A stretch of DNA of 64,000 bases from positions 71,052,001 through 71,116,000 of the forward strand of contig OZ038379.1 of the NCBI GenBank assembly GCA_964036045.1, given 5' to 3'. Origin of the DNA: Eutreptiella sp. 'Long Island Sound 2002'. Lineage: Eukaryota; Protista; Euglenida. The notes under the pieces are model-generated. The model was not told the origin of the DNA. It made no database searches and saw only the letters and a program-made list of their open reading frames with translations. Numbering within the stretch: the first letter of the stretch is position 1; the number at the start of each line of letters is the position of its first letter. Made by a program: the position numbers and the translations under genes. Positions 22,533 to 60,900 of the stretch are shown piece by piece.

Positions 22533-25337
22533 TCACTTGCCGTTGCTCTTGCCGTTGCTCTTGGACAAGCCAACCGGGACACCACGTTGCAGGGCGGCCT
22601 GCAGGCCCTCAATTGCCCTTTTTTTCTGCGATGGGGACGCCCCAGCGGCTGCCGTTACCAGCTTATCCTCCTCTTCTGTCCTCTTGCGATTTGCTCGCTC
22701 GTCCTCTTTCGCCTTTTTCTCCTTCCCCTTCTCTTCCTTTTTACGTTGCTTCTCCCGTGCCTCCTCTTGCTTCCGCAACTCGCGCTCAGCCTTCCCCTGC
22801 TCCTTCTGCCGCTGTTTATCGGTGTTTCTCCCCTTCCGCTTGGGAGTTTGCGGATCCGGCACCTCATCAACTTATGACTCACTCGTGTCCGCGTCTGCTG
22901 CCTGGTCAGGGGACTCCTGCTGGAACAGCGGCTGCCCGGTGCTTGCCCAGTGCATGACACTCCGCCACTCAACATCCTCCTCCGTGTCCCCTTTCCGGAC
23001 GCTCGTCTTCAGCAGGTTCACCACATTAGCTGCATTGTAGGGACCATCACATAGTACACCCCGTGCGCAATTCAACGGGACAGTCAAATGAATACAGCCC
23101 AGACTGATCATGTCAGGGCGGCGGCCATAGTACAGTGCCCACAGGCAGCGGGATGCATCACCATCCATGTGCGTGTCGTCCGAGTCGTCGTTGGGGTCCT
23201 CCAGCAAATTCACCAATCACCACAAAATAGCCAGACCCAGCCGCAGACCTTCAGTTAACGACTTTTGTGTGAGGAAGTGCGGCACCGCAGAGCCCAGCCC
23301 ATGGGTCTTCACAAGCAACAAAGTTGACTGCTCGAACAAATACGGCTCTTCTAGGCGCCCCACGTGGTACACAGCCATTCGCAAGGCCGTTGGGTACAAA
23401 TCTTCCAATTGCGACCGCAAGTGTTGTTCCACGGCGACCAAATCCCCATGGTGTCCATGAAAGGCGCCAAGTACCCCTTGAGACAGCACACGCACGATCT
23501 GCACACCAGGGATCCACCCTCCACGCCGCGAGACTTCAACAATGACGAGATTGTACTTCACCATTTGGATCTCATTTGGCACTGCGGTCACCGATCCATC
23601 GTACGCCCAAATTTCTCCGGATTCTGACCCCTTGCAAACATTGACCTTTGCCACCTCGCCACCAGACACCTGAACAGCTGGGTTCAACACTGGTCTCACA
23701 AGCAGTCTGCGATGTGCTTCAACATCTTCTCGAGCGCTGACCCACAGACCTGCCTTCAACAGCGCCTGGAGCGGTGGCCAGGGCGTGCTCTCGCTGTACT
23801 CCCAGCTCCCTTGCCATGCACCAAGATTTGCCAGACGGTGACTAAACTTCTTTGAGATGCGAGCCACTTCTTTGTGCCTGTGTGTACAGCAGCCATAGAG
23901 GAGGGCAGGAGGGCAGCGATCCACCAAGTCACAACGATCTGCCAAAGCGTAAATTTGCAGTTTGTTCGATCCTGGGCTCTGCAGAGCCCAGTACTGTCAA
24001 ATTGGTAATATGAAGGCTGAAATTGGTCACTGTGGTTCATTTGGGCTCTGCAGAGCCCAGCATGACTAAATTGGCAACTGAAGGGGGTGTCCCGGGGGGG
24101 GGGGGGTCGTGGAACATCATTAGGCATGGCCGCAGCGGTCGACAGCATCAACGTCACGGAAGCTTCAACGGTTGCAGTGTCTCTGTACATGCAGTCAATT
24201 GGCATCCCAGGGGATCCTGGGCTCTGCAGGGCCCAGAACTCTCAAGATGGCAATATGGCGTTTGAAATTGGTGAATGTTCCGCAAGTTCATTCCTGATTA
24301 CCGGTGCACTCTTGCCTAATGATGTCCAAGCCCCCCCCCCCCCCCCTCGAGACACCCCCTAATTCACCATTTTGGTCATGCTAGGCTCTGCAGAGCCCAG
24401 GTGGAGGACAGTTCGAACAATCCAACAGATCCAGCGTCTCTGTACATGCAGTCAATTGGCATCCCAGGAGATCCTGGGCTCTGCAGAGCCCAGAACTCTC
24501 AAGATGATAATATGGCGTCTGAAATTGGTCAATGTCCTCCACCTGGCCTTTGCAGAGCCTGGCATGACCAAAATGGTGAATGAGGGGGTGTCCCGGGGGG
24601 GGGGGGGGGCTTGGACATCATCGGGCTAGGTTGCACCAGTCATCAGGAGTGAAGTTGCGGAAGCTCCAACATTCCAACAGGCATAGCGTCTTTGTAGATC
24701 CTGTCAATTGGCATCCCAGGGGATCCTGCGCTCTGCAGAGCCCAGCAGACCCAAACTGTCACACTGAAATCGGTCATTACACTTCATCCAGGCTCCCTGT
24801 CGCAGCGGCCCATTCACAACAACACAGAGCTTCTGGAAGCCCGGTACTGTACTCTTCGGCGAGGCCATGTAGTTGCATACGCGCCAGAAATTGTCGGGTT
24901 GCATTCTAGTAAAGCATCGCACTGTATAAAGGGCAATCACCTGCTTGCGTTCCACCATCTTGCCGAGTGCGTCCGCGAAGGTGGCACCACAGGTCAAGGC
25001 CATATGGGCAGCTGGCCTCATTTGCTTGACGATTGTCTCCGTGTCGCTGGATTTTGCAGTCAGCCCCGCCTCCACGATTGCCTCACACATCAAGGTGACA
25101 ACGGTCTTCTTACATTGTGTGTCCTCAGCCGCCAGTTGTAGGAAATTGTTCAACAGTTGGGGTACATTGCTCTCACGTCCACTGTGCTGCGGCCTATTGT
25201 GTTGTCTAGCCAGCTTTCGCCTGATCTCGACGGATGTATCAAACTTCATGATGCGCACGTCAAAGTTAGTCATCCAGTCCTCGACCTCGCCAATCCTTGC
25301 TGTAACATCCTTGCAAATTTCATCACACGCCGCAAAG
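22533..25337 (-). pseudogene. Degenerate two-exon ORF, candidate RAG1/Transib-type DDE transposase
   Basis: Exon ...GAWMK joins YRCDLVDRC... across a phase-1 GT-AG intron. IWAYDGS followed by VLGAFHGHHGDLVAVEQHLRSQLEDL resembles the D1 region; later motifs are not cleanly recoverable. Ends in a Lys/Glu-rich tail. Confidence 0.4.
23939..24780 (-). other. Predicted 842-bp GT-AG intron of element C containing 7 palindrome copies
   Basis: Donor AAG T|gtaatg at 24780 and acceptor ctttggcag|AT at 23939; splicing gives TAT and joins two long ORFs in frame. Confidence 0.6.
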
Positions 25338-33296: not shown

Positions 33297-35585
33297 TAGC
33301 AACTACTGGCGGGACAACACAATGGTTTAGTGCCCAATGGAAAAGACTGCAACCCATTTTTCCATGTTCCTCAAAGGCTCCGAGGCACCGCACGAACTGC
33401 AAAGAGTTTCAGGATCAACAAGGTCACCACTTCACAGATGTTGTCGTCACAACATTCATCCCTCAACCTTCAAACTGCCATTCTTGGCCCCATTTTCACT
33501 TGTTGGCGGGAAAATGGGCTGCGGTACTTTCCATTGGGCACAAAACCATTATGCCGTCCCCCGGTGAGTTACTCGGCAAACAAACATGTTCCTCAAAGGC
33601 GGACAGGCACCACACGACGTGCAAAGAGTTGCAAGACCAACAAAGTAACCACTTGAGAGATGTTGTCCTCACCACAATGATCCCTCAAGCTTCAAACTAC
33701 CATTTTTGCCGAATCTTCATTTGTTATTGGAAAAAACAGCTGCGATCTTTTCCGTTGTGTGGTCCCCCGGATGAGTTGGTCGGCAAACAAACATGGTCCT
33801 CAAAGGCTGAGAGGCACATGACGACATGCAAAGAGTTTCAAGACCGACAGTGTCCGCACTTCAGAGATGTTGTCCTCACAACATTAATCCCTCAGGCTTC
33901 AAGCTATCATTTTTGCCCCATTTTTATTTGTTTTCTTTGGAAAAATGGGCCGCGGTCCTTTCTGCTGAGCACTAAACCATTGTGTCGCCCCCAAAGCCAG
34001 TAGCTAGGCAAAAAGACGTGTTCCTCAAGGGCACGGACACACCGCACCACAAGCAAAAAGATTCAACACCAAAAATGTCACCACTTCACAGAAGTGGCCC
34101 TCGCAGAATCGATCCCTCGGTCTTCAAGTTGTTATTAATGCGCCATTTTCGCTTGTTTTCTTCGGGAAAATGGGCCGCGGTCCTGTCCGGTGGGCCATGA
34201 ACCATTGTGGCGTCCGCCTTGTGAGTTGTTGGGCACACAAACGTGTTCTTCAAAGGTCAAAAGGCACCACACCAGATGCAAAGAGTTTCCGCACCAACAA
34301 GGTCACGACTATAGAGATGTTGTCCTCACAACATTGATCCCTGAACCTTCATATTGCCATTTTTGCCCCATTTTCAACTGTTATCGGAAGAATGGGCTGT
34401 GGTCCTCTCCGTTCGGCACTAAACCATTGTGTTGTCCCCCCGGTGACTTGCTCGACAAAGAAACATGTTCCTAAAGGGATCACAGGCACCGGACGACATG
34501 CAAAGAGCTTCACAACCACAGTGTCCCCACGTCAGAGATGTTGTCCTAAGAACATTGATCCCTCAGGCTTCAAACTGCCATTTTCGCCCCCATTTTCACT
34601 TCTGTTCTGAAAAATGGGTTGCAATGCTTTCCGGTGGGCAGTGAACCATTGTGTCGTCCACCGTGTGAGTTGCTAGGCAACAAGATGCGTTACTCAAAGG
34701 CCAAAGGGGCACAAGACAACATGCAAAGAGTTCCAACACCAACAGTGTCATCAATTAAGAGATATTGTCCTCACAACATTGATCCCTCAAGCTTCAAATT
34801 GTTATTTTTGCCCCATTTTCATTTGTTTTTGGCGGAAAAATGGGTTGAGGTCCGTACCACTGGGCACTAAACCATTGTGCCTTCCCCCGGTGAGGTGCTG
34901 GGCAAACAAACATGTTCCTCAAAGGCTGAAAGGCACCACACAACGTGCAAAGAGTTACAAGACCAACAAAGTAACCACTTCATAGATGTTCTCCTCACCA
35001 CTATGATCCCTCAAGCCTCAGACTGCCATTTTTGCCCCATTTTCATTTGTTGTCGGAAAAATTGGTTGCGGTCCTTTCCGTTGGGCACTAAAGAATTGTG
35101 TCGGCCCCCGATGAGTTGCTCGGCAAACAAACATGTTCCTCAAAGGCTGAGAGGCACATAACGACATGCCAGGAGTTTCAAGACCAATAGTGTCCCAAGT
35201 TCACAGATGTCGTCCTCACCAGATTATTCGGTGAGGCTTCGAGGTGCCATGTTTGCCCAATTTTCACTTCGTTTCTTCACGAAAATGGTCTGCGGTCCTT
35301 TCCGTGCGCCACTAAACCATGGTGTGGTCCCCCGAGCCTGTTGCCAGGCAAAAGTACGTGTTCCTCAAAAGCTGAGAGGCACCGCAAAAAATGCAAAGAG
35401 CTTTAGGGGCAACACTGTTCCCAGTTCAAAGGTGTTGTCCTCACAACATTGATCTCTTAGGCTTGCAAGTGTCATTTTTGCCCCATTTTCACTTGTCTTC
35501 TTCGGAGATATGGGCTATGGTGCTTTCTGTTGGGCACTAAACCATCATGCCGTCCCGTCAGTGAGTTGCTAGGCAAAAAGACATG
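33297..35585 (+). repeat. ~224-bp satellite array, block 4 (first ~65 bp still inverted)
   Basis: Same monomer; orientation returns to plus at ~33363. Confidence 0.95.
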
Positions 35586-38500
35586 ACTTGCATAGCCGCG
35601 GCACTCCAAGCTAACGTTGCCCTTCGCGTTGGCGTTGTCATTGCCCTTTGCCATCCTACCCTTTGTGACCGTCTGGGCTACCATGCAGTCAACGCCTAGG
35701 ATCGGTTGGAAAAAATTGCGGACAATGACCGCCGCGGAGTTGCCAGTGGCAGCCGACAGCGCATCCCTCATACCGGAATTACCACAAATAGTTACTCGCA
35801 GCACCCCGTGCAACCCTGGGTCCGGAATGCGATATTTGGCTGGGATGTGTCTATATATGGCTCCCATGGGGAGCACAACCTCCAACCACCCGTCAATGGT
35901 GGCTTCCCTGCCGAAGTTGGCAAGGCGGCCTCCCCTATTGCGGTCGCAAACCCAACACACCATGGCCTGTGAGGCCTCGGCTTAAAATTTTTTTACAATT
36001 GGCCATTAAAATTTGTGCCTTGGCATCGGCATAGCGGAAAAAGAGTGTTTCCCGGTCAGCACCGGAAGTATCTCAGAAGACAACATTACTAGCATCCCAC
36101 AATTGTTGGTCGAAGTCAACCTCTTGAGCAGCCGCGTACAAGGTCGCCCACTCCTCACTACCGCCCAGTAGCCACCAGCTTGCTAGTTGATTGGTTCCCT
36201 CAAGGGTGCAATGTACGTACGAAGCCTCGTGCCGCGACGTGCCTTCCACTGCTAGTGGCATCCAATGCATCCTTGGATTGCCTGGTTGTTGGACGTGGGC
36301 CGGCTCAACCAGTCGGCGGCGCCACACGTGTTGCAACCGCGCCAGTAACGTGCACAAGGCTCCGTATAGCTCTGTGTCATCCCCCGTCTTGGCTACAAAC
36401 CCCTGCGATGCGGGCTTTGCAAGCTGCTGCATGGTGACCCACACGTCCTCCCATGGTACGCCCTCGAGTAGATGGGGTGTGAGGTACTGCGCCTCTGTGC
36501 TGGACAGGTGCAACGACCGGATGCGCCACACCGCAGCGACGGTCTTCTCCCACATGGATGGTGCGGTGGGCAGAGCACCACTCCCCCCCCCGGTTTACCG
36601 GCGTGAGGACAATCTGGCCCGTGTCCGGGAGGTGCTTCAGTAGATACTCGGCTCCTAGTTCCCCAGAGACGACGAGAGACACTGGACGACGTGCAAAGAG
36701 TGTCAAGACCAACAGAGTCACCTCTTCACAAATGGTGTCCACACCACATTGATCCCTCAAGCTTCAAACTGCCATTGTTGTCCCATTTTTACTTGTTATC
36801 GAAAAAATGGGATGCCGTCCTTTCCGTCGCGCACTAAACCATTGTGTTGTCCCCCCAACGAGTTGCTCGGGAAACAAACGTGTTTCCCAAAGGCTGAGAG
36901 GCACCGCACGCCCGGAGATGGTCCCGGACCCGCTCTGCCGCCGTTTCCTGCCGCTCCTTCGCCGTTGCCTGCCGCTCCGCCTCCTGCGTCCGCTGCTCTG
37001 CCTCCAGGAGCTTGCCTTGCAAGCGGAGGACCTCCCCCTCCGCCACCACCGCCCATTTCTGCCACTCGGGCATGGCCCCCGCCTGCGCCGCCGCCCAAGC
37101 GTCCACCTCCGCAGCGGCCTGCGTTGCCAACAAGGGGCTTTGCAGCCGAGGGCTGGTCACCTAACTTGGCGGAAAGTTTGGGGGCCTTGCGGGGCCGGCC
37201 CACCTTGGACCCGCCGCTCTTGGAGCTCCGCATCGAGGAGGCATCGTCCTCCTGCTCCCCACGCCCCCCTCCTCCGCTTCCAGGTCCACCACTCCCCCCG
37301 CCTCCCCCAAATGCTTGCGGTGCCCCTCTTTTGCCCGCGTGAACATTTGGAGCCAAGCATAGCTCATGTGCTCGTCCGCTCGGTGCCCCCATCCCCTCAC
37401 CCCCGTCACCGCCAACGCTGTCAACTGCCTCAGCTGCCCCTCCAGCACCCCCGCCCTACCCTTCACCCAACAACCCATTCTCCAATGCCCTCCACGCAGC
37501 CGGTATGCGTAGAGGGCAATAATTGTCTCCCCCTCCTTCTAACCTCCCCCGGGGTTGGGGAACGTGATGGCACAAGGGAAGGACATTTTGAGGGGTGGCT
37601 CCCGCGCCCCATCCTGTGTCTCGACCTCGACCTCCCGGGTCGTCGCCACGAACCCCTCCCTTGCCTGCTTCCGTCCAGGGAGGTCGAGCTTGCATGCGAA
37701 CGGGGGCTGGGACCCTACCATGGAGAGGGAGCTGATGGGGGGGGGGGGGTCGGCGGGGTAGGCCGTGGCCCCCGTCCCCGCCACGGGGTGTGCGACGACC
37801 ACGGGGTTGGAGGCGCGGGGTGCAGGGGGGGGCTGCGGAAGTGGCCGCCGTGGGGTCTGCGGGAGTGGCGCCGGCCGAACTCGACGGCACGTTGAGGGTC
37901 ACGTGGCGGACTGTGCCCGACTGTGCAGGAGTATCAGTGTGCCCGGCCGGGCGGAATCGCTTGCGCGCATGCATGGCCGCACGGGGGTCCGGCAGCCAGT
38001 AGCGCCATTGCTCTTGAGAGTGAAATGAAAGGGAACAATGTACCTATTCATGCCAAATTTGCGCGAACTTGGCGCGAAATTCGTGAATCTGCATGCCTGG
38101 CCGAATCTGAAGCATTTGCGAATGCGCAGCACAATGTCGCGAACTTCAGGCAAACTTCGCGCGAATACGGGGTAGAAGACAATGCATACCTCACATTCAC
38201 ACGGTTAGGTCAACGCCCAGGTCCCTTTCTTGGACTCCTTTGCCCGCTTCCACGGCGGCTCATCGTGGAGCGGCTGCCAGGCGGGTGCAAGGCGTGTGGG
38301 GGGCACTATAGCCTTAAGTGCCCACGTCACCTCCACGTCGCCGTCCGTTGAATCCCCCTTCATGACCTTCATCTCGTGCGCCCCATTCCAGATCAAGATG
38401 TCCCCCGCGTGCACGATGGCGGGGGAGATTCCGTGGGCGGAGAGGGAGGAACAGGGGGTGGTGTGTGCACACGGGGGCCCTAGCTCCACCTCGGGGGGGG

Positions 38501-38840: not shown

Positions 38841-39270
38841 CACATGGTGCTGGGACGCATAGCATAGAAGGTAAAAAATGGCAGGAAAATGCTGAGCATA
38901 TTGCTCAAGATATTTGGGGATGCTCAGCATTCATATTCGGCAAATGGCACTCATATTGCAGGGTTGATCTCGGAAGTCCCAGCCAAAATTTCTTCCGAGC
39001 TCCCCCGGCACGGTCGGCTGGGAAGCCCATGGAACATTCCTACCGATATCGGTTGCCTTTTGGGACCCGATTTGGCTGCCAAAACTTCCGAGCATCTTTC
39101 CAAGGGATTTCACCAACTTCCAGGCGTTTTTCCACCGGTTTTTTTGTACCATGAACTACACCGTTCTTGGTTCCCAAATGCCACACCTCAGCAAAGAAAC
39201 ACACAAAAAGACAAGCATGACCGTTCACTTAAGCTTGAAATGTGAATGTTCAGTGGCTTGCCTGTTCATT

Positions 39271-41762: not shown

Positions 41763-41791
41763 GGTGCCTTGGAAACAGAAGATTGCAGTAG

Positions 41792-45965: not shown

Positions 45966-47689
45966 TGAAATTGACTAATCGGAATTCGAACATTGGTATG
46001 GTTGAAAAAATGGCTTTTAAAATGCAAACTAAAACAGTGACTCGCCCCCACCCCCTACATTTCAGACCCTAAAAAAACACCTCAGTTCGGGGTAACAAAT
46101 TCGACTTCATGAGGGTCACCAGGGCGGGCAATTAAGGCCTCCTAAGTTTGATGATCCCCATGGGAGGTACCCTTGCCAAATCCTCCAGCCGGAGCTTTAG
46201 TCGGGTCTCACTGACCTTCCTGATTTGCCCATGTTCCCGGTTCACGTCCAGCCGAAGGACCTTGTAGGATAACACCGCTGTCTTCTGGACCGCATCTGCT
46301 AGAGTGACTGTTTTCGAAGGTCCCTTCTTGCTTGCACGGGTGTGCGCCGTCCGTTGACTGGAGCCCTCGAAAGACCCGTGCGATGGTTGTGACAATCAGG
46401 GTGGCTCTGGGGCCACAGGCACATTGTTATTTGATTTTCGGGGTACGGATGACATGACAACGGGGGCTTCGAGGAAATTGAGGTGCTCTGGTCATGGATC
46501 TCAGTGACACACGGCGGTAATTTGTGGTTTTCGGTACCCACTGTCCCTAATTTATAGCTTGTGCAAAGGGAAATCCATGAAAAATGCATATTGTACCCTG
46601 AATCACACGTCATGATATTGTCAGCAAAAGATAGTACATCACATTAGCAAAGGCGGGATCACAGACAAAGAAACAGTAGCGAATTGTTGGTAGGACTGGC
46701 TGCAGCGTAACAATACCCTTTACCGGGCAGGCTTGAAACATACACAACAGCAAAACTATGCGAAATTTTTTGTCTCAATACAAAAATGGGAAAACCAATA
46801 TTGAAAACACCAATTATGCCAGATGTGGCGAAATTTCGGCATCCAATGCAAAAAGACCACAACCAAAGGACAGTTTCGGGTACATTGCAAGGACAACAGG
46901 TATGTCAGTCCCATGTTGAACCTGTCCAAAAACCATCTCTTCATCTAGAATTGCTACTGTATCGTCATCATCCGACACCGTACTGTTATCACTGTCGCCG
47001 TGGACTGCAAACAAGGCCACCTCAGGGCCATCGTGCTCGTCATCGCTTGCAATATCCGCACCTAGCTGTTGGTACACTGAATCATGTCAAGAAGAGCATA
47101 AACCCGCCCAAACAAGTCTGCACGACGTAGATGCAAAGCATCAACACGTGCCCTAATTGTCTGGACAGCATGAATTAGTGAGACGTGACCCGGAAATGGC
47201 GGTAGCGCTGGCAAATGCAAGACAGCCACAGCTGTGCAATTTATGGAGTGGTCAAGATGCAGTGGATCCACCCCATAATTGAAATAGGCATTGGTACATC
47301 TTGGGATTGTGCATGAGAGGCTGCCATCTTTCTCAAAAGTCGCCACAAGCATATCACGTGATTTGAGAAAACAATGTGGCAATGGGGCTTCTTCCGTAAT
47401 CCACACGCAAACAGCAACCGTGTAAGATCCATCCGTGAACGTCGATTGTTCACATTGCCAAGGCCCGGACGGCCAAAAACCTTGCAGAGCCCCCATTGGC
47501 AACATCCGTCATGAGGTGATCAACGTTCTGAAACCCACGTCTTGCCACAACCACCCTTAGCAGTGCGGAATCCATGCCCTGTGGTCACCTCACAGCAAAG
47601 AATCACATAATTGCCTCAGAATAGTGAAAAGACGGCATACCAAGACCGTCATCATGGTCATATAATTCATCAAAGGCGCACATTTCGGT

Positions 47690-48260
47690 ACAAATCAAAT
47701 CAAATCAACATACGTAAATGCAAATGCACAATAAGGGCATGAATTCATCAAATAATGAAGAAGTGACGAAATTTCGCGTCTCATTGGAGAAAAAATGCAT
47801 GAAAAAGGGGTATGATATCAGCTAATTTCAAAGGAGTGGCGAAATTTCGCTTCATTTTGGAATTTGGCTGATTTCGGGGTACAAAGCAAATCAAAGTAAC
47901 ATACACAAATGCAAATACACAACAGGGGCATTAATTCATCAAACAATGAAGGAGTGACAAAATTTTGCATCTCATTGGACAAAAAATGCATGAAAAGGGG
48001 GTATGATATCGGCCAATTTCAAAGGAGTGGCGAAATTTCGCTTCATTTTGGAATTTGGCTGATTTCGGGGTACAAAGCAAATCAAAGTAACATGCACAAA
48101 TGCAAATACACAATAAGGGCATTAATTCATCAAACAAAGAAGGAGTGACGAAAGTTCGCGTCTCATTGGACAAAAAAGGCATGAAAAAGGGGTATGATAT
48201 CGGCCAATTTCAAAGGAGTGGCGAAATTTCATTTCATTTTGGAATTTGGCCGATTTGGGG
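47690..48260 (+). repeat. Second copy of the 191-bp x3 array
   Basis: Same unit as 45400-45965. Confidence 0.93.
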
Positions 48261-48440
48261 GGTTGAAATTGACTATTCGGAATTCGAACATGGGTATCGT
48301 TGAAAAAATGGTTTTGGGAAACAAACTGAAACAGTGACTCGCTCCCCCCTGCATTTCAGACCCTAAAAAAACACCCTAGTTCGGGGTAACAAATTCCACT
48401 TCTTGAGGGTCACAAGGGCGGGCAATTAAGGCCTCCGAAG

Positions 48441-50260
48441 CAACAATGGGCACGTCCTCCCCACCCTCCCCGTCCATCAGGCGGAGGCAATCCTTTAGCT
48501 CCAGGGGGAGGTGGGGGTCGAGATGCGTTGCATTCGGCTGAACCCGCAAACGACGCTGATCGGGGGTCCACTGCGTGACCAGTGCCCCCTGCATCTCTTC
48601 CCCGGGGGGGGGGGGGAGCCCGTGGTGCCCGGCAGTGCTGACAAGGACGAGGACCTCCCCCTGTTGGAGGAGGACCTCGTCCCACCAATGGCCTCCCCCA
48701 GCCCCGTTCCCGCCTGGATCTTTAGGCTGTACTGGGCGGAGAGGGCCACGAAGGTCGAGATGTTGCAGCTCGAGGGGCTGCGGTCACGGGGGGGCGGCAT
48801 ATCTGGGGCAGTCGAAACATCCGTGTGGGGGAGCTGGTCCCCCGACTCAGCACCCGACACGATGATGGAACAAGGCATGTCAAACAGGTCTTCCAACGGA
48901 TCTGGGACACGGTCGTTGATGTTGTTAATAAATTTTGAGTATGGGCACTTGCCGTTCCCCCGGTCTTGGTGGGCTTGGACTGGTACCGCAGGGGGAGGGT
49001 GGGGTCCTTCCTCTGCTCCTCCACCGGTTCCACATTGAACACCGGGTCAAAATGTTGACGAACTTGGTTCCCTGCCGCCCAAATTTTTTCCACCCGCCCC
49101 TGGGTGGTCTTGCAGTCCTCCGCGACAAGAATATCGCGGTGAACTGGGTAGCCGAGGCGCTCCACAAAGGTACGAACCATCCGGGGGGCTGGGTGGTCAG
49201 CCAAAACGGAGGGGTTGGTGGTGGCATACGAGGGGGCGTCCTGCAGGGCTGCCCTACGCCAGGAGGGCTCGGGCGTAATGAAACGGGGGGGGGGGGTTCC
49301 GCGATTCCCCAATACCAACTTAGCCCCTTCATCCTATGGAGAGTGGGCAGAGTGATATCGGGGATGTGGTTGAGAGGGGGCTTGGTTGGGCGGCTGGGCA
49401 AGATGCCCACATCGTCCCACCACTAGGCCTGCACTGCCTTCCATTCAAAAGGAATTTTGGAGTGGTCACCCTGCGGCTCACCGGCAGGAAAGTAGTTATT
49501 GGTGGCAATCATGTCCATCCGCATGGGGTAGTAGACGAGGCCAGTGGTGGGGTAGATGGCACAGAGGCCGGGCTTGGGTTTGCCCACGATGTGTGTGGCC
49601 ATGATACCCAAAAGGCTGTCCACGGTTGAACCGGCGGGAATGAGCCGGACGGCCCGCAACCCTGGGAGGGCCGCCTGCAACTCCCGAAAAAGGTGAGTGG
49701 TCCAACCTTTTTTCCCAAACCATCCCGCCCTTTCGGGTGTTCGCATGTCAACATGAATCAACTGGGGGGGAGTGGCCAACCCCTTCGCCCACCCCACCAC
49801 CTCCTCCACTGCCAGGCCCCCCGTGTACGTGGCCTCCTCCAATGTGCCGGAGCGAAGGGGGATGCCCTGGTAGTGGCCCAAGGTGCCATCGGACGGGTTG
49901 GGGAGTGAGAGTGACCCAATCTGGGAAAGGGGATGCGACTCTTGAGTGGACATTTTCACAAAGAAAGCGAAGGTGAGGTCTTAACAAAAGAGATACGACA
50001 AGAACAGCATGCTCATGCAAAAATCAATGGATATTCGGGCAAAATTCGCGCGAATGTGAATGTGGATACAGATGAGAATACAATTGCCAACGAGGTTGCG
50101 AATTCGAACGCGAATTCAGTTTTTTTTTGTGAATTTAAGCTACATTATGACCGATTCAAGCTACAATTCACGCCGCTTGAATTTTTATGAATTTTTTGCG
50201 AGGTAAGCATAGCAAACGGGCACAAAGACAAGGCACCACGGGCAAAACGGGCAAGAAATC
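48441..50260 (-). mobile_element. Element A fragment A3a (5' region)
   Basis: 48447-49940 is colinear with 62520-64000; a ttcgcgcgaa-containing intron-like stretch lies at ~49982-50260. Confidence 0.85.
49423..49959 (-). CDS. Element A cargo ORF segment, GNAT acetyltransferase-like
   Basis: LIHVDMRTPERAGWFGKKGWTTHLFRELQAALPGLRAVRL resembles GNAT beta4/motif A/alpha3/beta5. A second copy lies at 63469-64000. Confidence 0.35.
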   Translation of the reverse strand: MKMSTQESHPLSQIGSLSLPNPSDGTLGHYQGIPLRSGTLEEATYTGGLAVEEVVGWAKGLATPPQLIHVDMRTPERAGWFGKKGWTTHLFRELQAALPGLRAVRLIPAGSTVDSLLGIMATHIVGKPKPGLCAIYPTTGLVYYPMRMDMIATNNYFPAGEPQGDHSKIPFEWKAVQA

Positions 50261-53200
50261 AACAAAGTGAGCGTACTTATTCAAAAGTGCCGCTCGAAGT
50301 GGGTACAAGCATCGCGGAACTGCCACGGGGGTTGTTTGTACGTGCTATGCATCATGGGGTACATCCTCCTAGGCTGGGACAGGGTGGTCACTTGCTTGGG
50401 CAGGACACAAGGGCAATACTGGCCCTTGTCGGGGCGAGGCACACCCGATTCCTATTTGGCATCCAACCACTCATTCGTTGAAATGGGCTCTAGCTTGGGC
50501 CTCAAGTGGGCAAGAGCAACCATAATGCCCGCTGCCCATACTCCCCGTGTGCTAGCGGCGGCCCGCAAAACCAGCCTCTCGTTCAAGCGGATCATCATAC
50601 CCAGTAGGGCTGTGGAGCCCGTGGGGGCGGCCCGAGGGAAGTACTCCGGCACAACATTCCTATAGGGCAACCAATATTTGTGCTGCTCCCCCTTGCAATG
50701 GACATCAGTGACAGCCTTGGTAGCAGGGCCCATCAAAAAGGCAAAACTTTGTCCACTTTGTCAACGGCTATGTTGTCGTCCCGCCACCCCGCGTCGGAAC
50801 CGTACGGGGCTGAGGCCTGGGGCGGGGCGTCTGAGGGTGCAAAAGCCATGGGAACATAATCTAAAATTGACACACAAAAAAGAAGAAAAAATTGTTGATG
50901 GGGCCCGAAACACCAGCGAGCACCTTTCGTGGAACAACGAGAGCAAAGCTCACGTCCGTCAGACCAATGTCACCAATGATTAAACCAGAGCAAACATGCG
51001 ATGAAACATCATCGGACACCAAACTAGAACTTACAAAGCGGGGGAGGAGATTGTAGCTCACCACCAGTTGCGAGTCATTTTGACGAGACACACACACCTT
51101 TAATTCGGATGGCCATGAACAACAGACTCGCATGGGACTACTCTACCACCTCCGAGGGCTATTCGGGGTTTGGGCTGCCGGTAACCCATTGTGAAACGAT
51201 GACCCCCATGCTTTGCCCCAAAAAAAGAAAGAACAGCTAGGGCCACCCGCAACAGGACCATGCCCAAGCACACGTTGCAAACGTTTTTTTTCAACGCAAA
51301 CTCTTGCCACCCACCACTACGTATTTTTTTCAAATTTTGCGCCAATTTCTTTCAACCGAGACACTTGTTCCCCCCCTTACCATGTGAAATTCCGCCTCCT
51401 GCGGGAGATGCCCCCCCCCCCCCCCCCTCGTGCCGCTCTCGGTGTGTTGCAGGGGCTGCCATCTAGGGGGTTTGTTTGTGCCATTTTTGTGGGCTTTGGG
51501 GGTAGGTGCTAGACGGGTATAAGCCATCACACTATGCATGGTGGCCGTAGGTGTGGCATGCACGTGTGGGGGCGTTGTCTCTCTCGTCCCTCTCTGTGGT
51601 GTGTTGGACCTATGGTCTTGCGGTCCATTCCCGGATCCGGCACCATTCCATCGGCGGTCCCCTTACTGCATGTCGTCATCTGGCAATAATTGATACGTGG
51701 CGCTGCTGCCCTGCGTATGATGAGTGAGGCAGTCACACAGCACGGCTAGCCGAGTGCATACTCTTTGTGCCATTCCGGGGAATTCACTTGTTGCAGCAAA
51801 GCATGGTGGGATACCTGCGGTGGCATCTAGGAGGTGCCGGCGCTTGTGGCGGGCGTTTGTTCAAGGCTCGCTGTGAAGAACACTGATGGTGAATAGGCTT
51901 CTCCATCGAATTAGGTATCGGTCTATCCTCATTGTTCTTCGAAGTCCAGCAGGTGTGACGCGTGATCGGAGTGCACGAAGGGCCTGGTAGTTTGGTTGTG
52001 ATGCAGGTACAAGCAGTCAGGGTATCATTGTATAGGGTGTTCCAAAAATTGTTGAACGCGGCGCCGGTGGTGGGTTCACTTCTGTCCTCGGTGCCACTGT
52101 GGTGCGGTGGCCCGAGGTGTCGCCTTGAATGACACGCGGGACGTGTTGCACCGCTGCAGTACGTCTCCTTAAGTAATAGTCCCGCTGCTGCTCGGTCCAG
52201 TAATCGTGGGTGTGATAAGCCGCGCCTTCATCCCATTCCATGTACTCTTGCTCCTGCTGCTCGTGATCGTCGTACCACCCAATGTTTGCCTTGGCTCAGA
52301 TCATGTTGATGACGTCCGGGTGGTGGTACCACTCGTCGGACGGGCCTTGGTCGTGGTGGGGTGTGTGGCAGCAAGCGCGGTGGTGGTTGTACCGAGGTTG
52401 TTGGCTTAAACTCCTTGGAGTATGTACCCTGTGCGAATGGCCGTTAAAAGAACTTTTGAATGAGAATGCGAATATGGGTGTCCAAGCCAACTATTTTGTC
52501 CCAAAAGAGGCTTTTTCAATGGGTTGGAATGGAGGATATGGTTTCAAACATCCGAAAAAATATAAAATACAGGTCCCTGCGAGAAAAATCCACCCTTTTT
52601 CTACACACTGGGTGGCCATGGTGGCCGTTTAATGCCCTATTTGTTATGTGCCGATCGGCTCTATTTGCTCCGACCCTTGCGAATGCGAATTTGGGACAAT
52701 TTTGCACGAATTTTGCGCAAACTTTGCGCGAATTTGGTACAATTTTCGCGTACGGGCATGCACATCTTCACCATAACAAACCAAGGCCTCTTTGCCATGA
52801 ACCGTCCAAACGTACTATGCTCGGTGTTTGCGCTGTTTGCGGCGGCTGAAACATTGACTAAGGGTATGTACATAGTTGAGGTCACTAAGGGCCCTCTTGC
52901 AGGGCCCGCCTAGCCAAACGTTGTACGGTCAACGGGCCTTGCCCACGCATGGACCTCTTTGTGACATTCCACCACTCCGCACGGAGGCTGTCGTCTATGG
53001 TGTGGTTGTCAACGACAACTTGCACACCTAGGCGCCCATGCAGAAGGCTTAGGCCCCAGCTGTTGTGCAACATGCGCTTGAGCCTACGGTGGCTGCCTTC
53101 CATGGCGAAGCATGAAAATTTGGGAGAGGATACCCCATTGGCAGGCAAAAAAGTACATGTGGTGAATCCACAAATGTGACCACAACAGCTTAGGCCATAA

Positions 53201-54202
53201 CAAGAGTAGGTGGCCTTTGCCCATCGCTATGCTACACTCACGTAACATTCCTAGATTTGCCCCGGACAGCCAACATGTCCGCCATGCATATATATACATC
53301 TTGGCAAAATTGTCCCACCGCAGCCTACAAACGTCCCCCCATGGTCTCCCCCCCACTCGCTCGTTGTTCATTCCCCTCTCTTCAAGGCACGCGGCAATGA
53401 GTGCCTCCCACCTCGGGGTGCGCATGAATGGCACAGCCGCGGCAGACTGCAACCTACCGTTGCCCTTCGCGTTGGCGCTGTCGTTGCCCTTTGCCATCCT
53501 ACCCTTTGTTGCCGTCTTGGCTTCCATGCCGGCAACATCTAGGATCGGTTGGAAAAATTGCGGACAATGACCGCCGCGGAGTTGCCAATGGCAGCTGACA
53601 CCGCATCCCTCATGCCGGAAATACCACAAATAGTTACCGGCGGCACCCCGTGCAACCCTGGGTCCGGAATGCGACGTTTGGCTGGGATGTGTCTATATAT
53701 GGCTCCCATGGGGAGCACAACCTCCCACCACCCGTCAATGGTGGGTTCCAAGCCGAAATTGGCAAGGCAGCCTGCCCGATTGCGGTCGCGAACCCAACAC
53801 ACCATGGCCTGCGAAGCCTCGGCTTTAAAAATTTTACAATTGGCCATTAAAATTTGTGCCTTGGCATCGGCATAGAGGAAAAAGAGTGTTTCCTGGTCAG
53901 CACCGGAAGTATCTTGGAAGACAACCTTACTAGCATCCCACAACTGTTGCTCGAAGTCAACCTCTTGAGCAGCCGCGTACAAGGTCGCCCAACCCTGATA
54001 CACGCTAGAAGTCCCAATCTTGATCTAGCCTAGAACGCTCTAGCTAGAACGTTCTAGCCTAGATTAGATCAATAATAGAACGATATAATGGCTACAACAT
54101 ATCCCAATTCTTCGTTGCTCCGCCGTGCATGCTTGCTATTGTCCGTAGTGCATTGTTAAATCCTTCCTTCTTTCCCGCTTAGATATTGGGCATTTCTTTG
54201 CA

Positions 54203-56160
54203 ATGAAACGCCCCGCCACTACCCCCCTTGCTCCCTCCTCAACCGGGAAGGATACTTCCCTCTTGTCTAAGGCACTACGTGAGATGAGTGGGGCCTCAAA
54301 CCTCAAGGATGAGCGGGTGGGCCATTACTTGGCCACGTGGGCGCTATCATGCCCCCTAGCACGGCAGCAATTCAACAACGCCATCCAATATGTGAACTCC
54401 GCCACTTCTACCCATACCATGGGTGAGGCATGCAAGGCCGCCGTTGAGGCATACGCCGCCTCCCTACTTCCCCCCACCGGCATGTGTGAACTAGTGCTCA
54501 ACACGAGGGCCCCCAAGGACTGGTGGAGGACCCTCTCGGAGCTCTACACGCTCCGTAAATTGGAGTATCACCGCACCGTCCCTAGTGGCCCCTACTCCCG
54601 TCCAATTTGTGCCAAGCGGGCTTTCAAAGCCCGTTGGAAGGAGTTGGTCGCCCCGGTGCAATTTGATGACCCGGTTGCCACGGTGTTGCCCAAGGCCACC
54701 GGGATCTCATGGCCCTTCGCGTCATGGGTCACATACATCCTCTCCCGGCCGGGCTTGGTGCGGTCAATCAACCGCACCTTCCCGTTGACGTTCATCGTCC
54801 GGGGAGATGGGAGATGCCTACCGCGTGGCCGGCGGCAATTGAACCCAACTCACCATCTCCTTGGCCAACTTCGAGCGCTTGGCCCGCTCCCCGGCGGGCC
54901 TTTGGGTGTTGAGCATGGCCAATTGCGATGACAAGGCCATGGACACCCTTGGGACGTTGCGTAAGAGCTATTGGGAGGTACTCCTCTCACCTAGTGCCTT
55001 TCACTCGTTCTAGTTTTGATCTAGTCGGCATCAAACACCGCTCGCTAGACGCTAGATTGGACTAGACTAGAACAAAATTAACCACCCCCCATGTCTCGTG
55101 TTTAGGTGATTCAAGATATCATCGACACGGGGCTGGTCCAATGGGGGGCCTCCAAGGAGGAGGCAAAGGTGATCCTCGGGGAGGATCAACCGTGGACGCG
55201 ACGGGTGATTGGGGTGTCCACATGACCCCAAGTGGGCTCCATGTTCAATGAGGGGATATGGAATGCCCCAACGAAGACTTGGGAGGGTAGTGCTAACCCG
55301 CGGACCATGGAGCGTGACGAGGCCAACTACACAGCCTTCCTCCTTGGGACGCCATCCTTGCAAGCCGCCGGCTGCAGTACGCAGCCCATTTTGGAATTGC
55401 CACGTGCCTGGGTCGTCTTGTGCATTTTGCACTTGACAATGGCCATGGGCCGCTTGTTGGGGGAGTTTGTCGACCGGGAGGCTAGGTCGGTCACCCCTGC
55501 GCTCCGTCAAGACCTGCAAGTCTTCCTGTCGGAGAGGAGTGCAGGTTGGAGCGTTTATGGGTCAGCATCCCCGGACGGGGAGGAGACGGCCAATTTTTTT
55601 GACGCATGGCCGAATATTGCTAAGTGCCTCGGCATTAGGCCGAGCACGGCTAAGTACAAGGCCATCGCGAACATGTGGGACCTGCTCCAGGCCCTCTATT
55701 GTACATATCAGGGCCCTGACCCATTGTTTTGTGCTGTTGTGGCGCGCGATTTCCGGCGACACTGTACTGTTGGAACAGCATCATGGTATCTACTAAGCCT
55801 TGAGCAGGATGTAGATACCATGTTGCACAACATTAAGCCATTTGGCCTGGCCATGTTCTCCGGTGACATTTCGGAAAGCATTAACCGCTTTCTGAAACAT
55901 GGTCACAACGAGCACATCAACCGGGGGGGGGGGGGGCTGTCGGGTGGAGGGGGTGGACGAGGTGTCGTGTCGTCAGTGGTCGGCCATCCACAGGGAGGCC
56001 AATGGGGAAGCGCAGTGCATGACATGGTTGTTTGCGTACTTTGACGTGTCGTGGGTTGTGCATGGGGGGGCCGCGGTCGCAAGTGCCATGCTCGGGCAGG
56101 GATGCCATGGAGGGAAAGAGGGTCAGGGTCACATGCAGGCTTCCCTGAACCAGAGTATTT
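54203..56160 (+). pseudogene. Element B transposase (two exons; 7-bp duplication frameshift, two stops, poly-G frameshift)
   Basis: TFIVRGDAY (D1) ... SMANCDDKAMDTL ... VILGEDQPWTRRVIG (D2) ... VVLCILHLT ... LAMFSGDISESINRFLK (E). The 3' end is approximate. Confidence 0.72.
54978..55105 (+). other. Predicted 128-bp phase-0 GT-AG intron, CTAG-motif rich
   Basis: TGG GAG|gtactc ... gtgtttag|GTG ATT CAA; removal joins SYWE to VIQDII in frame. Confidence 0.7.
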
Positions 56161-56208
56161 CGCAACAAGATGGCATCGCAAGAGCAGTTGGACGAGCTGG
56201 TGAGGCAG

Positions 56209-56352
56209 GTATATTTCGTGCTGTGCGTTCTAGCGCTGATCTAGGGAATCGTCCTAGTCTTGATCTAGGCACCACGATCGGCCACCAGACTGTCGCTAGA
56301 ACGCCGCCAGAAAAGTTGCCTAGAACGCCGCTAGAACGCTCCTATGCTACAG
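56209..56352 (+). other. Predicted 144-bp phase-0 GT-AG intron with inverted GTTCTAG/CTAGAAC clusters
   Basis: AGG CAG|gtatat ... ctacag|AAT GCA. Confidence 0.7.
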
Positions 56353-57777
56353 AATGCAGCGACCCAGGCGCTGATTGCGCAGATCTTGGAGGCGCAGAGG
56401 CGTGCAGCTCCGGCCGAGGAGGCGGAGCCAAAGGCTGACCAGGCCCCGAAGGGCGACCCACCCCCCCTTGCCAAGCCCAAGTCCAAGCCCAAGCCCCAAC
56501 CCCAAGCACCCCATCCACCATCGCCACCCCCTCCCGCATTGGTCGCCGAGAGGCGGGGGGCGGGAGGGTCCACGAGGAGGAGGAACCGGCGGAGGTGGAG
56601 GAGGCGCGGGGGGAGCTCAAAGGGTTGTTGGATTCCCGCGCCGCCTCCAAAGCGGCCAAGACAAGGGCGGAGACAAAAGTCTCGGCCTGGGAGGCAAAAT
56701 TGGCCAGCCTCCGGGAGGAGGGAGCGGAGGAGGAGAGGATCCGCTGGGGGGAGGCCAACCTTTGCAAGGCGAAGGTGAAGGTGGCCGAGAAGCAGGAGGC
56801 GATCGAGGGGTTCGATAGGGCGGTGAGGCGGAGCGAGAGGGAGTCGGCGGCGGTGGTGGCGAGGGTGAAGGACGAGGAGGTGGACGAGGTGGTGGAGGTG
56901 GACGTGGAGGGGGAGATGGAGGAGGCGATCGTGAAGGACGAGGAGGTGGACGAGGTGGTGGAGGTGGACGTGGAGGGGGAGATGGAGGAGGCGACCGTGA
57001 AGGAGGAGAAAGAGGAGACGAAGGTGGTGGAGGCGGCGCCGGCGGGGGGGGGGGGGTGAGCCAGTGGCTCAGGGGTTTGATGGGGTCGAGGGCTGCGGGG
57101 GCCATCCAGGACCTGCCATGGGACCCGGCAGTCCTGGCTGGCCCCCGCCCCCCTAACATGGGCACCCCCCTCCTACTCGACCCGGAGAGTCCGGTGTGGA
57201 CTCTCCGGTTTTTGTTGGTGCGGGTGCACCACCGGCTGTTGGGGGCGGGGCGGTGGGTATGGGTGGACGGGGGGGCGGGGGGTTGTCCACCTGGACAAGC
57301 CCCTGCGCCTGAGGGTGGTCGAGGGGTCGTGGGGGTGGCAACGTGAGTTGCCTGGGCCAGGGAAGCAATGGGGGGGAGGTGCCCCCCCCCCCCCCCGAAA
57401 GGGGGGTGGAGATGTTTGAGTTGGCGCAAACCAACATCTTCACCCCCGCGCGGAAAAAGGGGGGGGGCACCCACTGGCGATTCGTCGCCCACTGCTGGCA
57501 GGGGCTGTGCTTGGGGGGGGTGGAGTGGGTGGGGAAGGCCTGGGTCTGGACGCCGACCTGGTCGGCGCTATTGGACTTGGGGAATTTCAACCCCGAGGCG
57601 GCGAACCGGGGGGTGTATGCCGGGGTGGTGCACGGCATAGCCTCCCGGCCCAAGTCCAAGCCCAAGCCCGCCGCAGCCCCCGCTAGGGGCCCTGCGCAGC
57701 CGCACCCCCCCAACCCCGCGGACGCCTTTGCCAAGGCAGTGGGGGCCATCTCCCCCGCCCTGGACCGCCAAGGCACG

Positions 57778-57932
57778 GTATGTTGATTGCGTTCTAGCGG
57801 TGATCTGACGAACCGTTCTAGCGTTGATCTAGCCACCGCCGTGCCGCCGCCGCTAGAACGTCGCTAGAACACCGCTAGAATAGTTGCCTAGAACGCCGCT
57901 AGAACACACCTGCATGTTGTTTTTGTCTTCAG
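57778..57932 (+). other. Predicted 155-bp GT-AG intron with inverted GTTCTAGCG/CGCTAGAAC clusters
   Basis: GGC ACG|gtatgt ... ttttgtcttcag|GTT GTC; has a clear polypyrimidine tract. Confidence 0.7.
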
Positions 57933-60900
57933 GTTGTCAGCATGTAGACGTGTGGAGGCGACCCCCGCGGGGTGCGCGTGGAGAGGCGCGCTGGTGGAGG
58001 GCGGATGCGCCTCGTGGGGGTCACCGAGTTGAGCCGGATCTTGGGGACGAACCCCAATTTGGCCCTCTCGGTGCTGGAGGGTTTGGGTAAGTGGGAAGCG
58101 GGCAGGAGTGCGGGGGGCATGGACCCGCAGCGCAAGGGTTGGGGGAGGTTGGAGGACCGGGGGGGACGACATGAGCAGCAGAAGCAGCAGCAGCAGCAGC
58201 AGCAGCACCAGCAGCGGGGAGAAGACACCCCCCCGCAAGGCCACCAAACCCCCCCCCAAGGCCCCCAAGAAAAGACCCCGCCCCCGCCACTTCGAGAGTA
58301 GTGACGAAGAGGCGCCCCCCCCCAAGGGCAGCAGGGCAAGCACAAGCCCAAGGCCAAGCCGCAGGCCAAGGGCAAGGGCAAAGCCACGCCCCCCCACCCA
58401 ACCCCAAGCCCCCCCCTTGCAAGAAAGGGACCGGGACCCCTATGGGAATGTGCCGGGTGTGGGGGACATCCGGTATGTCCCTTGGGCGGAGGGGGGCAAT
58501 GGGGGGACCCTCAGCCAAGTGACGGTGTTGGGGGATTGGGATGAGGAGTTGGACCCGGGGGAGTGGTGGGTGGTGCCGCAGGGGTCCAATGGGGAGGGGG
58601 AGGGGGGGAAGAAGGGGAACAAGGGGAAGAAGAGGAGGCGGGAGAAAGAGGGGGGCACCTTCCGGGTGGCGGGGGAGCTCCTCTTCCTCACCCGGGAGGA
58701 GGCGGAGGCCCACCTCCGGGAGGCCTTGGAGGCCGGGGACAACGGGGACGACGGGGATGAAGGGGATGACGAGGGGGACGCGGGTGGTGACAAGGGGGAG
58801 GGGGGTGACAAGGGGGGTGAGGTGGGGGGTGACAAGGGGGCCCGAGAAGGAAGGGGACACGGGGGGTGGGGGTGAGAAGGGGGGTGCCGGGAGCAAGGAT
58901 GAGCCCCGGCAACCCCCCACCACATAGGAGGGGTAACCTGCGTGTCGCGACTCGCGAATGGGGGCCAGGGGGGGCAAGGGGGCGAATCGGGCTAACCGGG
59001 CTAATCGGGCTAACCCACCACCAAGTGACCCGGCGCCGGCCCGCCACGTGACCTTCCAAGTGACCTATGGGGTGCGGTGGGGGGCTGACCGGGCTAACCG
59101 GGGGGTTGGGGGGGGGGGACCCGGCGCTCCGTGAGTCGGGTCCAGCATCGGGACCCTGTGATTGGCCACGGCTGGCCATGGTAGCCGGGGCACCTTCTCT
59201 TTAAGAAGTGGCGGAGCATTCATATATATCGTTCTAGCGGCGTTCTAGCGAACCGTTCTAGCGGTGTTGTAGCGACGCTCGCTAGAACGTCGCTAGAACG
59301 CCGCTAGAACGAAAAAATTTTGGACTCCAAAATCAGGTGAAAACAGTGAAGTTTAAAAAAAAAAGTATGGGCCCCCGAGTATGGATAGGGTGGTCCAGGT
59401 TAGAAACCTCACCCCCCCCCCCCCCCTGCGGGGGGGTATCCCCCTCTTTTTTTCGTTCTAGCCGCTCTAGCCGGTTCTAGGCTAGAACGAGATTGGGTAT
59501 TCTAGCGTGTACCAAGGGCACTCCTCACTACCCCCCAGTAGCCACCAGCTTGCTAGTTCATCGGGGCTATTGGTTCCCCCGAGGGTGCAATGCACGTACG
59601 AAGCCTCGTGCCGCGACGTGCCGTCCACTGCTAGTGGCATCCAATGCAGCCTTGGATTGTCCGTTTGTTGGACGTGGGCCGGCTCAACCGGTCGGCAACG
59701 GTACAGGTGTTGCAACCGCGCAAGTAACGGGCAAAAGGCTCCGTAAAGCTCCATGTTATCCCCCGTCTTGGCTACAAACCCCTCCGATGCGGGCTTTGCA
59801 AGCTGCTGCATGGTGACCCTCACGTCCTCCCAGGGTACCCCCTCAACTAGATGAGGTGTGAGGTATTGCGCCTCTGTCTTGGACAGGTGCAGCGACCGGA
59901 TGCACCACACCGCGGCGACGGTCTTCTCCCAAATGGATGGTGCGGTGGGCAGATCACCACTCCCCCCCCCCGTCTACCGGCGTGAGGACAATCTGGCCCG
60001 TGTCCAGGAGGTGCTTCACCAGATACTCCGGTCCTAGTTCCCCCGAGACAACGTCCTGCAATGTCCTCAAGCGGCAAGCCCGGTGCTGCCTGGACTTGAT
60101 ATGGACAAAGGCCTTCTTCCCCTTGTCGCCAACCCCACGTCCCATGACAAAAAACACTGAGAATAGCCAATAAGCAATGCATGTCAATTTGCAATGTCGA
60201 GAAAGTGAGAGAAAGTCAACCCCATTGGCAAACACCGCACCCCAAAAAATTTGTACAAGCACCCCATGCGTTGGGAACCAGCAATAGACACAAATACTGT
60301 ACTAATTCGCGCGAATTTGGCGCGAAGTTCGCGCGAAGTTAGCATAAACTTTAGGACAGTGGTCAGCTGAGTTGTTCGCGCGTTTGCATGCAATCGCGCG
60401 AAGTCCGAAATTCGTGGCACGATCAGGACAGTGGTCAGCGATGTTGTAAATTACAATGGTTAAAGAGGCCGTTCGTAGGGCGACACTACGGGGACCCAGT
60501 GCCTGTGGAGGTCCCAAACCCATGGGCTGCGGAGGGCTTGGGGGGGCTGAGGGGGGAGCTTGAAGGCTGGGTTAGTTGCGGCCTCCACCACAGCGTCCCC
60601 CAGGTACCGCCTCTCGACATCGTCATGGCTGTCCAAGGCACCTTGAAACCCAGGCACCACCGATTGCAAGGTCAGCCCGTTCCTCTACGAAAGCAGCAGG
60701 CGCGCGGTGGCGGCCATTGCTGAGAACTCCCCCTTCGCCTTCGTTGCCTGGGCCTTCGGGGCCTGGCTCCCCGCCATAAGGTACCTCGTACCGCCCCCCC
60801 CCCCCGCCCCTGCCCCCCCCCCCCTTCCGTCTGCTCTTCCTGCTGCTGCCCCTACGTGCCCGCCTTCGGCTTGGTTTTGCAGGCCTGCGCCTGGAGATGG

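Follow-up and report, generated by a model that had tools for sequence, protein, structure and literature searches.

Three probable cut-and-paste transposon families nested in a euglenid satellite locus, one with a predicted RAG1/Transib-like transposase

Introduction

The CMCT clade of DNA transposons comprises EnSpm/CACTA, Mirage, Chapaev, and Transib as well as Plavaka, ESTA, and Lanisha, together with RAG1, and its transposases share a signature of two aspartates and a glutamate (D, D, E) with a C(2)C and an H(3-4)H pair between the second aspartate and the glutamate (Kojima 2025, PMC12730594). Its members mostly end in 5'-CA..TG-3' and generate target-site duplications (TSDs) of 2-5 bp; PlavakaA combines 2-bp TSDs with TGT..ACA termini, and ESTA is tied to RAG1 only via HHpred (PMC12730594). 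Canonical Transib is set apart from CMC partly by its TSD (5 bp versus 2-4 bp), although true Transib relatives with 3-bp or TA TSDs and without InterPro matches have been described, which are ~43% identical to HzTransib and are recovered by HHpred with 100% probability (10.64898/2026.08.26.747230). Here, we describe a 64,000-nucleotide stretch from Eutreptiella sp. 'Long Island Sound 2002' (GenBank assembly GCA_964036045.1, contig OZ038379.1, positions 71,052,001 to 71,116,000; hereafter the window), which from 35.6 kb to its end at 64 kb consists of piled-up transposon copies, among them members of three families designated A, B, and E.

The window is eukaryotic repeat DNA, made of satellite and stacked transposon copies. 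[quoted passage not shown] The original prediction, made from the sequence alone, had reported several divergent RAG1/Transib-type transposase families in one satellite locus. Several divergent DDE transposase families are indeed present there, and six-frame translation recovered the predicted motifs in place (twelve strings of at least five residues, the remaining shorter or split ones being located too). Their assignment within the CMCT clade, which differs in strength among the three families, is the main subject of this analysis.

Results

Proteins identical or nearly identical to the open reading frames (ORFs) of the window occur only in ENA assembly ERZ25074135, whose contigs reach several Mb in length and in whose genome all three families are multi-copy and intact copies of E, A, and B are found; sequences numbered L and P below are copies and proteins from the database used for comparison. 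The original prediction had proposed a genome search for intact copies, and for E they are present elsewhere in the same genome, with ORFs of 827-830 aa. E has 15 close homologues, the 90% cluster of the protein P0001 holds 157 members (several of them 827-830 aa long), and an exhaustive profile search returned 342 matches, some in other assemblies.

The E transposase gene of the window (39271..41810, minus strand) consists of a 710-aa ORF (39271-41403) and an upstream piece in another frame extending to 41810. Its identity to P0001, which is intact at 827 aa, is 88%, and it has a frameshift near 41190 and an alanine in place of the second catalytic aspartate (D2) at 40942-40944. On the minus strand, LYADGY, containing the first aspartate (D1), lies at 41208-41225, followed by ITAAHH at the mutated D2 position (40936-40953), CVAC (40894-40905), PVLH (40756-40770), YMHGCSH (40333-40353), and AGERDLRVAK (40261-40290). 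Two details of the original motif set have to be corrected here: ITAAHH, listed as the D2 motif of E, is a mutated form of the family motif TADHHH (D in 23/32 sequences), and the string '..TQ..S..F' is an out-of-frame read past the frameshift near 41190, where intact copies read LYADGYQPRGRPNINTKISIIDF / ...YADGYQPRGRPNINTKISIIDF. Within the family, the motif residues D, D, C(2)C, LH, H(3)H, and E are strongly conserved; C287-x2-C290 is kept in 32-35 of 35-36 sequences and H473-x3-H477 in 56-59 of 67-70, both ahead of E491/E494.

Structure prediction with AlphaFold2 on an alignment of nine sequences gave a predicted local distance difference test (pLDDT) of 33, and the 126 sequences from the exhaustive search were needed; with these, the model of P0001 residues 130-680 reached a pLDDT of 86.4 and a predicted template modelling score (pTM) of 0.87. 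In the fold comparison with RAG1 and HzTransib that the original prediction had proposed, RAG1, BbRAGL (amphioxus RAG1-like), and HzTransib came far ahead of any other solved structure. Foldseek ranks 1-46 against the PDB are all occupied by these three proteins, led by 6dbw_A (E = 1.8e-6, template modelling (TM) score 0.42, 465 columns) and including HzTransib 6pqn_A (E = 1.1e-3), and the next family is represented by the hAT transposase Hermes (E = 2.8e-2, TM 0.22). Since the PDB matches include no CMC structure, this search points to the wider clade and does not tell CMC and Transib apart.

In the E model, D183 ends strand 1, D274 lies just past strand 5, C287/C290 occupy the loop thereafter, LH opens a ~150-residue helical insertion, and H473/H477 stand right before the helix bearing E491/E494. 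The model thus places the motif residues as an RNase-H-fold transposase requires and gives the E transposase the RAG1/Transib architecture, i.e., an RNase-H core, a helical insertion, and a catalytic E491 or E494 on the next helix. The modelled C(2)C and H(3)H pairs are positioned like the RAG1 zinc site and might likewise bind zinc. Based on this model, E very probably belongs to the CMCT clade, where it probably constitutes a distant, separate deep lineage; because its profile has no match to HzTransib, E is not a close Transib relative.

The E element of the window (38841..44021, minus strand; 94-95% identical to L001/L002 by blastn and delimited by its end sequences) is a dead copy. Compared with the intact 9-kb copy L002 3897-12915, ~175 bp are missing at the 5' end and ~3.7 kb in the interior, and the 3' terminus ...CACCATGTG stops at 38841. 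Full E copies start with CACATGTACC... and finish with ...CACCATGTG, so that the termini read CACATG...CATGTG; the terminal heptamer is CACATGT / CACATGG, and E alone of the three families has such a CAC heptamer. One E copy with a paralogous empty site (GGCCAACCCTG) is compatible with a duplication of A or of AC, i.e., 1 or 2 bp, and the flanks of three full copies (L002, L010, L011) repeat a single base (A/A, T/T, T/T). The TSD of E is therefore 1-2 bp and probably 1 bp. E copies diverge by ~1-7%.

Some further features of E can be noted. A 1-bp duplication, as seen in only three copies, would be below the 2-5 bp reported for the clade. The ends are bipartite: after CACATG[T/G] come 12 bp whose sequence is not the same at the two ends, and these lead into a 10-mer that is, CAGCATAGAA (L002 3897-3926 and 12886-12915; L010 1914 and 10922; L011 1053 and 11077; window 38841-38870). 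With a 12-bp spacer at each end, this layout is reminiscent of recombination signals, which consist of heptamer, spacer, and nonamer. Inside the element, an unstranded 149-bp tandem array (41792..42302) has 3.4 copies in the window versus ~14 in L002 (7893-9971). The remnant of an upstream ORF (42833..43543, minus strand) corresponds to an intact 368-aa ORF at L010 2760-3866, for which neither Pfam nor the PDB gave a match; an ORF at 5276-5874 (minus strand), 39% identical to it, lies in another insertion (5.1-11.9 kb) that contains no E-type transposase.

Family A is present in three copies, all on the minus strand. A2 (52423..64000) comprises the pieces 52423-53991 and 59519-64000, runs past the window end, and is split by B; the 3' terminus of the family, ...GGGTACA as read on the minus strand, lies at 52423, and the transposase pieces of A2 carry AVDGT, LYADAK, CWVR, DPGLH, SHLWIHH, and AMEGSHRRLK and contain several frameshifts. 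A1 (35582..38840), which is 89-91% identical to A2 and matches the A-family hidden Markov model (HMM), is cut at the satellite boundary with loss of the part bearing the E motif, and element E breaks into it at 38840/38841; the motifs of A1 read LAVEGTS (with D1 mutated), RYADAK, CWVC, and DPGLH. A3 (44010..50307, in the pieces 44010-44312 and 48441-50307) is a 5' part only, with the 5' terminus TGTACCCAC... (read on the minus strand) at 50307. The individual motifs, again on the minus strand, are located at 59617-59631 (AVDGT), 53860-53877 (LYADAK), 53788-53799 (CWVR; CWVC only in the second copy, A1, at 35946-35957), 53650-53664 and 35808-35822 (DPGLH), 53159-53179 (SHLWIHH), and 53077-53106 (AMEGSHRRLK).

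Better-preserved A copies show the order PLAVDGT, 76 aa, CADGK, 22 aa, CWVC, ~40 aa, D[YP]GLH, ~175 aa, SHLWIDH, ~20 aa, FAMEGSHRRLK, and the family has 89 database matches. A complete copy of ~5.6 kb (L006 6037-11669) has the termini TGTACCCNNTGCGAANGG ... GGGTACA, i.e., TGTACCC...GGGTACA, between CT/CT flanks, indicating a 2-bp TSD (CT) in this single copy. Due to this motif order, the TGT..ACA termini, and the 2-bp TSD, A most likely falls in the CMCT clade, an assignment that we make with moderate confidence and less firmly than that of E.

The A ends share an 18-bp terminal block followed by a second block, TTTTGAATGAGAA (window, from 50307 downward and from 52423 upward; L006, at 6037 and 11669). 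The gap between the two blocks measures 3 bp at the 5' end versus 13 bp at the 3' end, a 10-bp asymmetry found in two independent copies. A1 contains at 36674-36909 a 236-bp satellite piece where A2 has 835 bp of unrelated sequence (60053-60888).

The B element (53992..59518, plus strand; self-comparison and fetched copies) is full length at 5.5 kb and lies within A2. Its terminal inverted repeats of ~45 bp have the consensus CCCTTGGTACACGCTAGAAG... and the termini CCCTTGG...CCAAGGG. The empty site is intact in A1 at ~36150 (...GTCGCCCA|CTCCTC...), which reveals a 2-bp duplication, CA; in two further full copies, at L004 5904-11258 and at L005 5830-11189, the duplicated bases are CT and TG, so that the TSD is 2 bp in 3/3 copies (CA, TG, CT). 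At least 209 ORF matches to B exist in the database. With regard to the expectation of 2-bp rather than 5-bp TSDs throughout, duplications are short in all three families and 2 bp in B and in the one A copy, whereas the three full E copies agree on 1 bp.

The B transposase gene (54203..56041, plus strand) has two exons (exon 1 from 54203 to ~54977, exon 2 at 55106-56041) separated by a 128-bp GT-AG intron, and this splicing indicates that the genome uses canonical GT-AG introns. In the window, the gene is disrupted by a frameshift at ~54809 and by in-frame stops at 54840-54842 (exon 1) and 55223-55225 (exon 2). On the plus strand, FIVRGD lies at 54791-54808, where RGDAY is D1 and GDAY... continues in the next frame from 54810; it is followed by MANCDDKAMDTL (54915-54950), LGEDQP with D2 (55175-55192), CILH (55421-55432), and ISESINRFLK (55868-55897). 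The order in B is RGDAY, ~81 aa, GGDQP, ~77 aa, LCILH, ~150 aa, SGDISESINRFLK, with spacings of ~81 aa from D1 to D2 and ~230 aa from D2 to E. In B, the D, D, and E residues are accompanied by C(2)H, and the interval from its D2 to its E contains no C(2)C and no H(3-4)H. We class B as an unplaced DDE transposase that has a C(2)H motif and makes 2-bp TSDs; membership in the CMCT clade is a tentative and rather doubtful assignment for it.

To speak of three unrelated DNA sequences that encode the same ordered motifs is fair, the three being dissimilar, with the correction that the full order is shared by E and A and that B is missing C(2)C and H(3-4)H. E-x5-[LA]-K is common to A, B, and E. In composition-matched shuffles of the A protein, the core C..C ... 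H(3-4)H ... E-x5-[LA]K recurred in 0.06%, and in shuffled E a fuller ordered pattern recurred in 0.15%; as both patterns were defined after the data had been seen, these figures are indicative only. Local and global hhalign comparisons of E with A, E with B, and A with B yielded nothing significant, and the motifs were not co-linear in the alignments. In Pfam, ten E-family proteins matched no transposase family at E <= 10, and Transposase_21, DUF4218, Plavaka, and RAG1 (PF12940) were matched neither by the A, B, and E pieces nor by single E-family members. Phmmer and profile searches of PDB sequences for A, B, and E gave low-complexity or chance matches only and no transposase. No RAG2-like or other recognisable partner gene is found in intact E, A, or B copies.

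The setting of these transposons is a 224-bp satellite array broken up by insertions, as delineated by Tandem Repeats Finder and by blastn with two satellite units (blocks at 1-5131, 11868-15735, 15832-20655, 25338-29979, 30049-31002, and 33363-35585). The nesting order follows from self-comparison and from further copies in the same genome: B lies inside A, and E adjoins A copies at both ends. Tblastx and HMM searches revealed no further copies of the three transposases in the window beyond A1, A2, B, and E. All of these are inactive, E through the D2 D-to-A change, a frameshift, and truncations, B through a frameshift and stops, and A through several frameshifts and its splitting by B and E.

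Other insertions accompany the three families. A3 is split by an unrelated 4.1-kb insertion (44313-48440) with two direct blocks that are ~90% identical (45253-46146 and 47538-48440), each containing a 191-bp x 3 array. The satellite is also interrupted at 31003-33362 by a separate insertion, which contains, on the minus strand, an ORF with a WW domain (32372-33106; Pfam E = 3.5e-7) and an ORF (31695-32384) that appears pogo/DDE_1-like by eye only (AVDGAPCH...PPNGTPY), without Pfam support. Within the first insertion (5.1-11.9 kb), tandem arrays with 52-bp and 78-bp units occupy 7452-8401 and 10036-10966, and the 78-bp array yields long spurious ORFs with chance Pfam matches. Beside another A copy, L007 carries a LINE (long interspersed nuclear element; RVT_1 plus an endonuclease domain) and a long terminal repeat (LTR) retrotransposon, at 5142-8617 and 18424-20804; the host genome is transposon-rich.

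Discussion

Several results weigh against reading A, B, and E as related transposases of the CMCT clade. Their coding sequences show no mutual similarity by tblastx, family HMMs, or hhalign; no Pfam family is matched by the A, B, and E pieces at E <= 0.1; and in searches of all PDB chain sequences, RAG1, BbRAGL, and HzTransib among them, the A, B, and E profiles (that of E built from 126 sequences) retrieve none of these three at E <= 10. At the sequence level, these searches reveal no link of A, B, or E to any named family. The membership of A would rest on short motifs picked after inspection, and B both lacks C(2)C and H(3-4)H and has termini other than CA..TG. Even for E, the model aligns with RAG1 and HzTransib at a TM of only ~0.4 and 9-15% identity, and the spatial convergence of D183, D274, and E491/E494 is suggested by the topology alone.

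These points have to be considered together with the alternatives. One of them, close to the lineage originally proposed, would place A, B, and E all in a diversified RAG1/Transib lineage proper, branching next to or within Transib and away from CMC, that had shifted from 5-bp to 2-bp TSDs. This could explain why RAG1, RAGL, and Transib are the best structural matches of E and why its CACATG termini resemble the Transib/RSS (recombination signal sequence) heptamer in a bipartite arrangement with 12 unrelated bp and a conserved 10-mer. TSDs of 3 bp and of TA, along with a lack of InterPro matches, have also been reported for bona fide Transib relatives, so neither TSD length nor an absent Pfam match excludes Transib; those relatives, however, are ~43% identical to HzTransib and reach 100% in HHpred (10.64898/2026.08.26.747230), whereas the 126-sequence E profile misses HzTransib, BbRAGL, and RAG1 in the PDB even at E = 10. 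The structural matches do not discriminate, as the PDB matches include no CMC structure, and the D-D-C(2)C-H(3-4)H-E signature is clade-wide and therefore does not place A, B, or E in the RAG1/Transib lineage; moreover, B lacks the zinc motifs, and the termini of A and B are not CAC.... The original interpretation is supported in part, and we consider its strict version improbable.

For B, and possibly A, another superfamily in which a [C/D](2)H motif likewise occurs alongside a long insertion domain (hAT, MULE, P, Kolobok), or an unnamed one, has to be considered, in which case the RAG1 likeness would be a generic DDE pattern. B is dissimilar to E and A, lacks C(2)C as well as H(3-4)H in the stretch from D2 to E, and ends in CCCTTGG...CCAAGGG rather than CA..TG; its SESINRFLK and P..W..LCILH presumably resemble MULE and hAT signatures. 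However, hAT elements produce TSDs of 5-8 bp, MULEs of 8-10 bp, and P elements of 7-8 bp, and Kolobok duplicates TTAA, all unlike the 2-bp TSD in 3/3 B copies. No Pfam model of hAT, MULE, or P is matched, and the D1-D2 (~81 aa) and D2-E (~230 aa) spacings of B, together with E-x5-LK, agree with A and E. We regard this origin as a real contender, though one with less than even odds. That the motifs are chance matches in non-coding or unrelated ORFs, with no transposases at all, could be imagined from their shortness and from the frameshifts and stops that fill the window copies, and yet it is extremely unlikely in view of the long intact E ORFs (827-830 aa) elsewhere, the tens to hundreds of copies per family, the defined inverted termini in all three, the empty sites for B and E, the rarity of the pattern in shuffled sequences, and the confident RNase-H-fold model, which rules chance out for E.

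Returning to the reading of A, B, and E as cut-and-paste transposons, as a plausible mechanism the transposase would bind the terminal inverted repeats and, with metal ions bound at its D, D, and E residues, nick and excise the element. The 3'-OH ends might then be joined to the target at positions staggered by 1-2 nt, and repair of this stagger could produce the short duplications observed. We infer such D, D, E catalysis and cut-and-paste transposition with a 1-2-nt target stagger for these families. In a more specific and speculative reading, which we think possible and would not favour, E represents an undescribed deep RAG1/Transib-like lineage with the rank of Plavaka, ESTA, or Lanisha, in a non-animal host, with recombination-signal-like ends and a 1-bp stagger, in a genome containing several such lineages (A, perhaps B). 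Under that reading, E would have been recently active, because its copies differ by ~1-7% and intact ORFs of 827-830 aa are present.

RAG1 assembles antibody and T-cell receptor genes and descended from this broad transposase group. To our knowledge, the group has few known lineages beyond animals, plants, and fungi, and the solved structures are only those of RAG1, RAG1-like proteins, and Transib. E, with its intact copies, defined ends, and confident model, would thus provide a distant comparison point for ancestral features of the RAG1 architecture and its zinc-site use, and for the evolution of bipartite element ends and changes in target-stagger length. The locus also carries a warning that the D-D-CxxC-HxxxH-E motif set alone does not assign a protein to the RAG1/Transib lineage.

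Compared with the CMCT clade, A, B, and E show no detectable similarity to its Pfam models (Transposase_21, Plavaka, RAG1), the E TSD may be 1 bp, and B differs in the motifs and termini discussed above. In contrast, E and A follow the clade's motif order of D, D, C(2)C, H(3-4)H, and E, the TSDs of all three families are short and lie within or just below 2-5 bp, and E has CA..TG termini. A resembles PlavakaA in its TGT..ACA termini and 2-bp TSD. By description, there is also similarity to Mirage and to those further CMC elements that duplicate 2 bp, in the 2-bp TSD, the CAC termini (for E), and the motif signature of the clade. A group related to RAG1/Transib that makes 2-bp TSDs is an already known category, and the locus therefore does not represent a new kind of system. 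From RAG1 and HzTransib, E is separated by the lack of HMM-level similarity and by a TSD of 1-2 bp versus 5 bp, and from RAG1 also by the absence of a RAG2-like partner in Pfam searches. Nevertheless, the solved structures that match the E model best are those of RAG1, RAG1-like, and HzTransib (6dbw, 4wwx, 6b40, 6pqn), over 414-530 columns, with the same order of catalytic and predicted zinc-binding residues, and E ends, like RAG1/Transib substrates, in a CAC-type heptamer, a spacer, and a second conserved block. In resembling RAG1 at the structure level only, E is comparable to ESTA, whose tie to RAG1 was made by HHpred.

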